A stretch of 64,000 nucleotides of DNA from Macrostomum lignano (taxonomy: Eukaryota), in NCBI GenBank assembly GCA_002269645.1, contig NIVC01000644.1, forward strand, positions 62,001 to 126,000. Direction: 5' to 3'. How positions within the stretch are numbered: position 1 is the first letter of the stretch; each line of letters begins with the position of its first letter. Of the stretch, positions 32,214 through 59,200 are shown one piece after another. Under the pieces are notes generated by a model. It did no database searches. It worked only from the letters and a program-made list of their open reading frames with translations, and was not told the origin of the DNA. The position numbers and the translations under genes are program-made.

Positions 32214-35200
32214 CTAAGCAAAGCTTTCATAATTCAAAGCAGACTGACAGGCAGTCCTCACCTCTTTAATAGCGTCCTTGATGAATGGCTTGCGATCCGA
32301 GATGTCTATTGGCTCGAATTTGGCGTACACCTGGGTGGTCATTGGTTTCAGGTGTGTTTATATACAGGGGTTAATGGTATGTTTATATACAGGGGTTAAT
32401 GGTGTGTTTATATGCCTTTATGGTGTGTTTATATACAGGGGTTAATGGTCTGTTTATATACAGGGTTAATGGTGTGTCTATATGCCTTTATGGTGTGTTT
32501 ATATACAGGGTTAATGGTGTGTTTATATGCCTTTATGGTGTGTTTATATACAGGGGTTAATGGTGTGTTTATACACAGGGTTAATGGTGTGTTTATACAC
32601 GGGTAAATGGTGTGTTTATATACAGGGTTAATGGTGCTTACATGGCTTTATAGTGTTTATACATTGGCTAATGGTGTGTTTATACAGCGGTTAATTGTGT
32701 ATTTATACAGTGGCTAATGGTGTGTTTATACAGCGGTTAATGGTGTGTTTATACAGTGGTTATTGGTGTATTTATACAGCGGTTAATGGTGTGTTTATAC
32801 AGTGGTTATTGGTGTATTTATACAGCGGTTAATAATGCGTTTATAGAGTGGTTATTGGTGTGTTTATTATCGGTTTATGGTCTGTCTATACAGTGGTTAA
32901 TGGTGTGTTTACAAAGGCTTATGGTGTTTTTATCAGCGGCTAGTGTTTATGATGTATTTATACAGTGGTTAAAGATGTTTATCATCGGTTTATGGTGTGT
33001 TTATATGGTTTTCTGTAGTTTATAGGGGTTCCTTGTTGTGTTTAGAGTATGTTTGGTTGTGCTCAGAGTCAGCCCAAATAAAGATAGCGAATTCGAAGAC
33101 AAACTGCACAGCTGGCTGCTAGTGAAGGCAGACTCACCTGCTTAATAGCCTGGCTGAGCATGAGATTGTCCAAGTCCGCCTTGGCCAGCACATCCGCCAC
33201 CGCCTGCTTGATCTCTTCATCAGTTGGCGGCTTCTTTGGCGACTCCTGTTCTTCCGGCGCAGTCTTCAGCTTCTTCAGCGGCATGTCGTCTTCGTCTGAC
33301 GAGTCGGCTGCCGCCCCGCCGTCAGAGTCCGACGACACCGACGCCTTGCGCTTGCGGCTGGCGCCACCGGCCGGCTGCCTCTTGGCTGGCGAAGCCGCCT
33401 TCTTTGCTGGCGTCTTCTTTTTCGTCTTTTGCAGCTTTTTCTTTTTTTTCTTGGCGTCGGAATCGTCGGAGTCGGAGGCGTCGGACCCGCTGCTGCTGCT
33501 GCTGCTCACCTGGTCGTCTTCTTCTTCCTCCCCTTCGCTGCCGCTGCTGGCGGCCGCTTTCTTAGCCGGCTTCTTCTTTTTGCCAGCCGATTTGCTGCTA
33601 GAAGCAGCAGACTTGGATTTCGAAGACTTGGAGGATTTCTTCTTGCCGCCGCGGCCCTCCTGCATTAGCTGGAATGACAGCTTCTTCGGCGGCTTCTTGC
33701 CGTTGTCGAACGGCTTAACAAGAAACTCGCACAGTCGCTGCGCCATGTCGCGGGTTCCGCCGCCGCTACCCTGCGAGCGCTCCAGGTCCAGCGCGAACAG
33801 GCTCTTCTTCAGCTCCTTCACCTTGCGCGACGCCGCCCGGTCAACCAGGCGTTCGAATTCTTTCGAATCTTTGCTAAACTCGAAGCCGTTGAATTCAAGC
33901 AGGTTCTTTCGAATTTCGTTGGCCACGCCGGAGCGGTTGAAGATGAGGCTGTGCAGCAGCTTCAGGTCGTCCGGCTTGCTCTGGTACATGAAGTACAGCA
34001 CCCGGGGGCAGTCCCGCAGCTTCGTGCCCCGGCCCTGGGGCAGCACAACCCGGCTGTCCACGTGCTGCTGGTACTGCTTGTCAATCACCTCCGATAGGCG
34101 CTCCACCTGCGCAAGGTCAGAGTTTAATTGGGTTTGTTAGCGTCCCTAGCAACGAGATAAAACCTTAATTAGCGTCTTTGGAAAGAGTAAATCAAGTTAG
34201 CGTCCCTAGAAAATAGGTGTTGCTAATCCTTGCTCAAATAATCATAGCAACAAGGTAGCTCGAGCACCTGTCCTCATAGCAACAAGGCAGTTCGAGCATC
34301 TGTCCCCATAGCAACACGGTAATTCGAGCATTTGTCACCATAGCAACAAGGCAACTCGAGCATTTTTACCATAGCGACAAGGCAATTCGAGCATCTGTCC
34401 CCATAGCAACAAGGCAATTGGAGACCCTGTCTCATAGCAACAAGGCAACTCGAGCATTTGTCCCCTTAGAAACAAGTAAATTAGAGCATCTGTCCCCATA
34501 CCAACAAGGCAATTGGAGACCTTGTCTCATAGCAACAAGGCAACTCGAGCATTTGTCCCCTTAGCTCGTAGAAACGATTAAATTAGAGCATCTGTCCCCA
34601 TAGAAACAAGGCGACTCTAGCATTTGTATCCATAGCAACAAGGCAGTTCGAATCTGTCCCATAGCAACAAGCGACTCAAGGGTTTGTAACCTTCGAGCTT
34701 CGAGAATCTGTCCCCATATAGCATCAAGACAACTTAAGCATATGGCCTCTGCACCAAGGCAACTCGAGCATTTGTCCCATAGCAACAAGGTAGTTCAAGC
34801 CTGTCTCCATAGCAACAAGGTGATTAGAGTCTGTCCCCATAGCAACAAGGACAATAAATTTATAAGAACGCACGCATATTTGGGAATTCCAGTTCTTAAA
34901 GAGTGCAGTTTTTTTACCTTCTTTCTATCCCGCCGCATCCCCTCGCGACTTGGCGTTGGTGGAGCCGGCGACTCGGCTGGTCGACGACTTTTCTGCGTTG
35001 GCGAAGCCTTCGGCTTTGGCTTGGCCGCCTGCTTTTTCTCATTGGCTTCCTTAGAAGCTCCAGCAGGCTCACTGTTCTCCATCTTCTCCTCGGCAGACTT
35101 AGCTGGAGAATCGGCGCCATTGGAAGCCACCGGGCTGGCTTTCAAGTTGTCTGCGGCGGCGGCGGCGGAGTCTCCGCTGGGTGCAGCTGGGGCCGACTGG

Positions 35201-56263: not shown

Positions 56264-59200
56264 ATGATGCAATTGTCCCTGCTGCCGCTGCTGTTGCTGC
56301 AGCTGCTACTCAGCTTAGCATGCCATTGCGCCTCAGTCAGCAATGATCAGGTGCACTTCAACAATCCGCACCTGCTGAGCCCAGAGGAGAAAGCAGCTGG
56401 CAGCGCTGGAACTCCTCCCGCCAATGGTACTGGCGCCGTGAATCGCAAATACTTTGGCGGAGTCGACCTCAACAAGGAGGCTCACCGGCTCAGACAGCAG
56501 CTGGAAACAACCGCCAAGGATGAGTTGGGCATAGTTGCTATGCAGGTGAGATTTTAGTTTCATTTTTTTAGTATATCAGCAATCCAGTTTTAATCTCCAG
56601 TTAGTTAATTATTTCAGAAATTACTCACTGCAGTGTTTAGGTCAAGACTAAGTATTTTGTTAATTAAATAGTCTATTCTGGTAAGAATTGTTATTAAGCT
56701 CAATTGAGTACTATCTGTATCATAAATCCTAGGAGAGAGGAGTTAAGAGATGAGATAGGAAGGGAGAGAGAGGGGGACGGGAGAGGAGGGGGGAGGAGAG
56801 AAGAGGGAGGAAGATAGAGGGAGATAAAGGAGGGGAGAGAAAGGAGAAAAGAGAGAAGGGAGAAATGCGAGAGACAGGTTAGAGAGGGGATAGAGGGAGG
56901 AAGAGAGTTTATTAAGGAGAGAAGGGAGAAAGGAGAGGAGTAGAGAAAAGGGAGAGAGGAGAGAGATAGAGATACAAGGGAAGAGGGGACTTGGGAGATA
57001 AGAGGAGAAAAAGCTGACAATCGACACAAACCTTAGGCTGGCCGCAAAGTTTCAAACGACCCGAGGGCTGGACAGAGAGGCTCTGCGGGCCGCATGTCTG
57101 CAAACCGGAGTTTGCCGCCTCCCAAGTTTAAAGCAAAGTTCCCGTTGCACTTTGACAGGCCATCTATGACAAGCAGGCCTACACGCCATTCGAGAGCAAC
57201 GGCATGGAGGACGCCCGCTCCCTTGCAGCTTCGCTCTCTCTGCGGTTATCGCCAATTAAAGGCATATTAAAACAGTTGCTAAGGCCCATTGTACTTTACT
57301 ACGGTTTGCACAAGAAGCAGCGGATGAGCCCCAGGCTTGACTGCTGCAACCTGGCCAACTCCGACCTCACCTATGTGCCCACCTACGGCGCCGCGGTGTC
57401 CAGGCAGACCTCATGCGACCTGATACCGCCCAGGCTGGGCCCTAACGTGTTTAATCCGGGCAGGAAGTTCACCAAGATGCTCGACCAGTACATGAAGTAT
57501 TGGTCCAGCATCAAGTGGCAGTACTTCATCTCTGCCGAGGGGCTGCACACCGAGTTTCCCTCGCATAATTTCAAACGGAGCCGGATTCCGTGCTCCGCTA
57601 TGCACAGGTGAGTTCTGTCGCTTTTGAGTTTGGGAGATGCGCGATTGCTTTGAGCAGGGTTAGTAGCTCCATTAGGGATATTAGATAAATTCTCAATTAG
57701 GGAATTAGATGCCCGATTAGGGAATTAGATAGATTTCTTATTAGGCAATTAGATAGATGTCCGTTTAGGGAATCAGATAGATTTAGGGAATCGATTAGGG
57801 AATTAGATAGATGCCCGATTAGGGAATTAGATAGTGTCTTATTGGGGAATTAGATAGATACCTGATTAGGGAATAAGATAGATGCCGGATTAAGGAATTA
57901 GATAGAAGCCCGATTAAGGAAATAGATAGATACCCGATTAGAGAATTAGATGGATGCCCGATTAGGGAATTAGGTAGATGCCAAATTAGGGAATTATAGA
58001 ATATATATCCCCGATTAGGGAATTAGATACGCTCGTAGATGCCTGATCAGGGAATTAGATAGATGCCGGATTAGGGAATTAGATAGATGTACCCTTTAGA
58101 CTTTTAATTGGTACGACTCAATTGATATTTCATCAGGCGTGTAGAACAAACATGATTTATTATCAATTAGAAGAGTAATAAAACCGCATTTACTATCTGT
58201 AAAATCTTAATTAAACTACTCACTAAGAATGAGTAGTGTAGGCAGCATATTCACTGTAAATGTATCTAAAACAGAACAAAACTGACTGAATTAACTGCGC
58301 CAGAGTTCGCCACCGGGACGTGTACGTGCGCTCCGTTCATCCGCGCCCGATGCACCTGGTGCTGGTGCTCGACAGCGGCCAGATGAGCGCTCGCGACTTC
58401 CGCCTCGGCCTGCTGGTGGCCCGAGCTCTTGTGGACAGTCTGAGCGAGAAAGATCGCCTGGCCCTGTTTGCCGCGGCCGGCACCATCCAGTACCCGCCGG
58501 CTGCCAGCGACGAGACCGGCGGCCCCACCATGTTCCCCGTGACTCACGAGGCCAAGGCTGGCCTGGCGCACTTTCTTGATAGAGGCGTGCGCAGACAGGA
58601 TAAAGGCGAGTCATTCAGTGCATGCGAACTCTTCATTTGTACTTTTACTGACACTTGGGGCGTGAAATTAGGAAATTCAGGCTCCGAAACAAAGGACCAA
58701 AGGAAGGGTGCAGAATGCAGACACAAGACCAGAATGCGGCAGACACAAGACCAGAAGGATGCAGACACACAAGACCAGAATGCGGCAGACACAAGACCAG
58801 AAGGATGCAGACACAAGACCAGAAAGATACAGACCCACAAGACCAGAAGGATGCAGACCCACAAGACCAGAATGCGGCAGACACAAGACCAGAAGGATGC
58901 AGACACAAGACCAGAAGGATGCAGACACAAGACCAGAAGTATGCAGACCCACAAGACCAGAATGCGGCAGACACAAGACCAGAATGATGCAGACCCACAA
59001 GACCAGAATGCGGCAGACACAAGACCAGAATGCGGCAGACACAAGACCAGAAGGATGCAGACACAAGACCAGAAAGATACAGACCCACAAGACCAGAAGG
59101 ATGCAGACCCACAAGACCAGAATGCGGCAGACACAAGACCAGAATGATGCAGACCCACAAGACCAGAATGCGGCAGACACAAGACCAGAATGCGGCAGAC

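Follow-up and report, generated by a model that had tools for sequence, protein, structure and literature searches.

Recurrent TA-flanked CGCTCG insertions in Macrostomum lignano, probable excision footprints of a TA-targeting transposon

Minos, a Tc1-family transposon of Drosophila hydei, has ends that begin with CGAGC, and its footprints CGAG and CTCG are accounted for by the two overhangs pairing with each other, which gives a heteroduplex mismatched at its two central bases; the terminal inverted repeats (TIRs) of mariner elements, for their part, can be slightly imperfect. Excision footprints are a textbook outcome of Tc1/mariner transposition and not a new phenomenon: the target TA is duplicated, and end-joining leaves overhang bases between the two TA copies (PMC2874221, PMC3878927). 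Minos targets and duplicates TA in this way and leaves a characteristic 6-bp footprint, made up of terminal bases and a TA copy (PMC3386967). Tc1, Tc3, Sleeping Beauty and Frog Prince, with 2–3 nt 3' overhangs, leave the recurrent fixed scar TA-C(A/T)G-TA (PMC3878927, PMC2874221), and the mariners Mos1, Himar1 and Hsmar1 also target TA and leave short 3' overhangs at the excision site (PMC3878927). A Tc1/mariner family has been described in the flatworm Macrostomum lignano itself, DD37E/Mosquito (MS), which duplicates TA and of whose 35 copies 6 are intact (PMC10379824). Here we analyse a 64-kb stretch of M. lignano contig NIVC01000644.1 (assembly GCA_002269645.1, positions 62001–126000; henceforth the window, in which position w corresponds to contig position w + 62000), where TA-flanked insertions sharing the core GCTCG recur at unrelated sites. 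With a probability of about 0.7, we consider them to be excision footprints of a TA-targeting cut-and-paste transposon of the IS630/Tc1/mariner type, the donor element itself being putative.

M. lignano is a recent polyploid, and two more contigs, NIVC01000645.1 (loci L001, L004 and L007) and NIVC01000800.1 (loci L003, L005 and L008), hold homeologs of the whole region at 86–98% identity. These loci, reached via the annotated DEK, VWA/Cache and F-BAR genes, served as orthologous comparators; with the window and locus L002, a part of NIVC01000644.1 identical to window positions 22150–45232, they form the M. lignano sample of about 256 kb (the window plus seven loci) that was searched for a donor. 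Four insertions were verified against an empty allele:

34562–34570, + strand: scar a, TA-GCTCG-TA, an insertion of 7 bp within a single unit of the DEK-intron minisatellite.
37039–37048, + strand: scar b, TA-CGCTCG-TA, an 8-bp insertion within copy 1 of MITE-X, a MITE (miniature inverted-repeat transposable element); recent.
53949–53958, + strand: scar e, TA-CGCTCG-TA, an 8-bp insertion, intergenic.
58028–58037, + strand: scar f, TA-CGCTCG-TA, an 8-bp insertion in one intronic minisatellite unit of the VWA/Cache gene; old.

For three of these sites a first-pass annotation of the window had proposed empty alleles within the window itself, and all three comparisons hold. Scar a is missing from the neighbouring 95-bp higher-order unit (34412–34506), which lacks GCTCGTA (CCCCT-TAGAAAC; CCCCTTAGAAAC versus CCCCTTAGCTCGTAGAAAC); the scarred unit has no counterpart in the homeologs, and the empty site is read from the sister unit. 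Where MITE-X copy 1 reads CATC-TACGCTCG-TATAC around scar b, copy 2 has CATC-TATAC with a single TA; the identity of the two copies is 99.0%, with 6 substitutions over 596 aligned positions. Beside scar f the adjacent minisatellite unit reads TTAGATAGATGCC, against TTAGATACGCTCGTAGATGCC in the scarred one. The comparators of scar e are homeologous: L004 (~8750) and L005 (~8190) both read GCATTATTATA-TTATTTA (GCATTATTATATTATTTA, eight bases fewer), where the window has GCATTATTATACGCTCGTATTATTTA. The filled alleles thus consist of TA, 5–6 nt and a second TA, and in four sites out of four a single TA, no more, stands in the empty allele where the insertion falls, for which the chance is about 6e-5 given a TA frequency of 0.089.

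The full word TACGCTCGTA was found, as claimed earlier, exactly three times in the window (37039–37048, 53949–53958 and 58028–58037), always on the + strand. It appeared in none of 100 dinucleotide-preserving shuffles of the window, and the Markov expectation is 0.002–0.012 copies per strand, some 0.01–0.02 copies being expected. Of the TA-N6-TA words that occur three or more times, no other is at once dispersed, GC-rich and CpG-containing, and borne neither by a minisatellite nor by a MITE. Since the flanks of the scars are mutually unrelated, the word is not part of any repeat consensus, and the four apparent scars are shown to be independent events. The reverse complement, TACGAGCGTA, occurs at L004:3158, in a locus oriented as the window and in unique sequence with no comparator, so that the sample contains both orientations of the filler, CGCTCG at three independent window sites and CGAGCG between TAs at this locus. 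Because the 10-mer is so rare, a fifth event is the probable explanation. Matches to the 9-mer form occur, too, at L003:3747 and at two orthologous positions, L007:23604 and L008:22294; as scars these matches are unproven, the chance expectation being 0.24 per 64 kb.

Two further positions, which had brought the proposed number of recurrent insertions to six, have homeologous counterparts of the same length. At 40405 (site c), where the window has TACTCGTA, both homeologs read TACTTGTA, and 0.67 copies of such a word are expected by chance. At 50333 (site d), TATGCTCGTA had been taken for a scar possibly altered by CpG decay, and the L005 homeolog reads TATGCTTGTA without any difference in length. 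For one-mismatch matches to the 10-mer the expectation per window is about 1.1, and two were seen, at 50333 and at 49684, the latter likewise without an insertion. The words TACGAGC (19723), TACGAGCG (31606) and GCTCGTA (29852) were rejected as scars or element ends, being either conserved without an indel in the homeologs or not flanked by TA on both sides. The nested series of 4-, 5- and 6-nt fillers seen in the first pass is in this way reduced to its 6-nt and 5-nt members. A Minos-like 4-nt filler (CGAG or CTCG) inserted between TA copies was not encountered, the site at 40405 being the sole TACTCGTA of the window and the 4-nt filler word TACGAGTA being absent from the whole sample.

The distribution of the scars among homeologs also gives an indication of their ages. 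Scar f itself lies at the orthologous positions L004:11877 and L005:11793 and, being common to all three homeologs, is old: it was there before the three homeologous copies diverged. The other three, a, b and e, are specific to NIVC01000644.1. MITE-X copy 1 is absent from the homeolog L003; this copy is young and contig-specific, and scar b, made after the copy had inserted, is recent and the youngest datable scar of the set. With one scar that predates the homeolog split and another in a young MITE copy, the process that makes them has been both long-running and quite recent.

How might such scars have been made? Reverse complementation of TACGCTCGTA to TACGAGCGTA changes nothing but the two bases in the middle (TACG-CT-CGTA versus TACG-AG-CGTA), a near-palindrome of the kind that would result from joining two inverted-repeat ends, each starting with CG beside TA. 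In the mechanism that we propose, the element would insert at TA and duplicate it, and at excision its transposase would cut the non-transferred strand a few nt inside each end, leaving the flanking DNA with 3' overhangs that consist of terminal transposon bases; host end-joining would then seal the break and trap the overhang bases. Two models could account for the filler itself. In the first, identical 3' overhangs CGAGC(G) would pair at their outer bases with two central mismatches, and the heteroduplex would be resolved at random to CGAGCG or CGCTCG; this follows the logic of the Minos model, with an overhang that is longer. In the second, standard 3-nt overhangs from imperfect ends (CGC... 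and ...TCG) would be joined without overlap to give CGCTCG, in which case the orientation of a scar would record the orientation of the insertion. The 5-nt form GCTCG would be the 6-nt scar less one base. A cut 5–6 nt inside the end would exceed the 2–3 nt usual for Tc1/mariner (PMC3878927), and donor ends reading CGAGCG would imply an unusually deep cleavage stagger for the superfamily. Such a long stagger is possible and not required, and the terminus '...CGCTCG' deduced in the first-pass annotation is possible as one among several options.

Compared with the described systems, the putative footprints share the TA duplication and the retained filler while differing from each in detail. The filler is of 6 nt (CGCTCG or CGAGCG) or 5 nt, not the 4 nt of Minos. 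Tc1, Tc3, Sleeping Beauty and Frog Prince have CAG-type ends, unlike the CG-type ends expected here, and leave shorter scars. For mariners, ends CGC... and ...TCG joined 3+3 would yield precisely CGCTCG, whereas the footprints listed for Mos1, Himar1 and Hsmar1 are shorter (PMC3878927). The DD37E/MS family, the sole Tc1/mariner family that we found reported for M. lignano, also duplicates TA and has some intact copies; its termini (CTGGG at both ends) cannot generate CGCTCG, and it was rejected as the donor. Two other superfamilies do not agree with the sites: piggyBac elements target TTAA and excise precisely, and here TA is hit in varied contexts with the filler left behind; hAT elements make an 8-bp duplication and leave variable footprints, and here TA alone is duplicated and the filler is constant.

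A different scar in the same region is of the canonical Tc1/Sleeping Beauty form C(A/T)G. At 35411–35417 the window reads TA-CTG-TA, a 5-bp insertion (35413) with respect to both homeologs (GCA-TACTG-TATATG). It suggests that a second TA-targeting family, with CAG ends, has excised in this lineage, and we count it in favour of the proposed footprints because it indicates that scars of this type are left here. A further 6-bp insertion, at 43721–43726 with respect to L003 (GTCTA-TATAGG-TACAG), can be read as TA-TAGG-TA and is a possible TA-flanked scar.

Several observations weigh against an origin by Tc1/mariner-type excision. A search for matching termini confirmed that there is no intact donor element in the 64-kb window, as had been stated before, and across the sample no element with matching inverted repeats was found in either the form TA+CGAG...CTCG+TA or the form TA+CG...CG+TA. 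Three transposase probes (Sleeping Beauty, Minos and Mos1) gave no Tc1/mariner-like coding match by tblastn in the same 256 kb. The terminus of the putative donor is deduced from the scars, and the insertions are read from assembled contigs. For the version with 5–6 nt overhangs, the perfect 2-nt microhomology products TACGAGCTCGTA and TACGAGCGCTCGTA are absent from the sample, although numbers are small. In its full form this version, a TA-specific transposon of low copy number and recent activity whose CGAGC(G) ends would be cut 5–6 nt inside and form a 6-nt heteroduplex resolved in either orientation as by the toss of a coin, seems to us doubtful; such an element would be a candidate native vector for flatworm transgenesis. 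The absence of a donor from 256 kb says little about the whole genome, and the donor is probably of low copy number, located outside the sampled DNA, or lost; a low-copy mobile element would fit the three contig-specific scars within 20 kb.

The one apparent hit of the terminus search, L007:4939–5909 (TA-CGAATGC...GCATTCG-TA), is internal to the long inverted repeats of a larger, non-TA element (L007 ~4807–6056) with a 7–8 bp target duplication, GTCTCTG. The catalogue of insertion polymorphisms among homeologs yielded piggyBac-like, hAT-like, P-element-like and SINE-like elements (SINE, short interspersed element), none of them with a TA duplication and CG ends.

One competitor is the explanation offered in the first pass, in which a single element hopped locally and either strand-biased repair or a long stagger of 5–6 nt produced uniform orientation and a nested 4-5-6 series. 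Its core, an element inserted and excised repeatedly, agrees with our results, and the three contig-specific scars (34562, 37039 and 53949) do fall within 20 kb, with none in the matching homeolog stretches. The remainder of the proposal is not supported. Orientation is uniform inside the window, where each of the four verified scars reads on the + strand, but this amounts to a two-sided p of only 0.125, TACGAGCGTA has the opposite orientation at L004:3158, and a strand bias of the scars is not supported. Neither the 4-nt member of the series (40405) nor the T-variant (50333) is an insertion, and the ancient scar f, common to three homeologs, does not belong to a single recent trail. A near-palindromic scar of 6 nt is indeed what overhangs of 5–6 nt would be expected to leave, but a 3-nt stagger on imperfect ends yields the same scar. 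Taken as a whole we find this explanation unlikely.

Another TA-specific process outside Tc1/mariner, for instance an uncharacterised transposon superfamily or a recombinase leaving behind a constant filler of 6 nt, is improbable as well. The failure to find a Tc1/mariner donor or transposase in the sample speaks for it, as does a scar that exceeds the canonical 3-nt footprint of Tc1 and Sleeping Beauty (PMC3878927). On the other side, excision by IS630/Tc1/mariner elements has as its signature a duplicated TA together with a fixed filler that is nearly palindromic, and the superfamilies present in the window use other targets (TTAA for the piggyBac-like element, 8 bp for hAT-like elements and 3–4 bp for MITE-X).

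The assembly was made from PacBio reads with Canu and polished with Pilon (PMC5730564), and an artefact of assembly or polishing might be suspected given that three of the four scars are on NIVC01000644.1 only and that all are sites in assembled contigs. This we regard as very improbable: scar f is in three separately assembled contigs, and a high-complexity octamer that recurs at unrelated loci, always at TA, is in our judgement unlike expected long-read errors. Templated insertion of the polymerase theta type was rejected by inference, the same octamer at unrelated loci being unexpected if it had been copied from local flanks. That the scars stem from a Minos transgenesis vector, as its CGAGC ends might suggest, has a negligible probability, with no verified TACTCGTA or TACGAGTA insertion and with scar f older than the divergence of homeologs that are 6–10% apart, which effectively refutes a vector origin. 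The genome authors did inject Minos constructs into M. lignano, but integration in the transgenic line took place without Minos transposase action, and for the DV1 line the PacBio data appeared in a separate publication (PMC5730564).

If the scars are excision footprints of a Tc1/mariner-type element, they point to a TA-targeting DNA transposon family of M. lignano that we did not find described in the literature searched. The putative family would have been active before the recent genome duplication as well as after it, and since one event is younger than a MITE copy of 99% identity, the element may still be mobile. The sequence of the scar constrains the first bases of the donor ends and therefore makes a genome-wide donor search straightforward. 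An active endogenous cut-and-paste element, if such it proves to be, would be of interest to the M. lignano community.

Other mobile elements of the window were delimited largely by comparison with the homeologs:

35839–37492: hAT-like non-autonomous element with TIR CAGTGTTGGGCACC and 8-bp duplication ACTATAAC; absent from L001, present in L003.
36424–37203, strand not assigned: MITE-X copy 1, with TIR GGCTCATTCCATATAAG and a target-site duplication of 3–4 bp (ATC or ATCG), its junctions read against the empty site of L003.
41188–43546: piggyBac-like element with TTAA flanks and a broken DDE_Tnp_1_7 frame over several open reading frames (ORFs); absent from both homeologs.
47699–48277, − strand: MITE-X copy 2, the empty-site comparator of scar b.
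53966–54580: element of 615 bp with ends CCCTATTGG...CCTATAGGG and 8-bp duplication ATTATTTA, directly adjoining scar e.

MITE-X is not a TA-targeting element, and its copy 1 is nested in the hAT-like element on NIVC01000644.1 only. The left duplication copy of the 615-bp element begins at the last A of the TA of scar e. A few bases off, the homeologs instead have another MITE, which is palindromic (L004 ~8763–8950, duplication ATTTATAT), and the AT-rich spot has thus taken three hits. An insertion of 3.5 kb found only in NIVC01000800.1 (L003:3367–6904, between window positions 39136 and 39151) has an uninterrupted ORF of 630 aa with P-element transposase domains (Tnp_P_element, TNP-like RNaseH and GTP-binding); in an upstream ORF a THAP-like CSVFPC motif was recognized by eye, and Pfam gave no family for that ORF. 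The insertion is possibly an intact P-like element of a flatworm.

As for the genes of the region, a DEK exon ORF of 345 aa on the minus strand (33069–34106) is 100% identical to an M. lignano protein. The window contains coding ORFs of an NHL-repeat gene (26000–30000) and of the VWA/Cache-domain gene (56100–64000), whose counterparts are annotated on the homeologous contigs, while L002 lists no NHL gene call and protein searches returned no VWA/Cache protein from NIVC01000644.1, which points to annotation gaps for both genes on this contig. A protein search with the Cache-domain exon gave no match, and a chimeric query then recovered the homeologs. Rfam and tRNA scans of the window gave no matches. 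Minisatellites are extremely dense across the window (1–64000), with dozens of arrays, many of them intronic, that have periods of 20–60 bp and reach up to 1.9 kb, in agreement with the published difficulty of assembling the M. lignano genome (PMC5730564). Finally, L008 alone has an insertion of 369 bp (reverse complement, ~2290–2660, between window positions 19686 and 19693), which begins with a run of G followed by GCGTAGCTCAGC and looks, by eye, like a tRNA-derived SINE.

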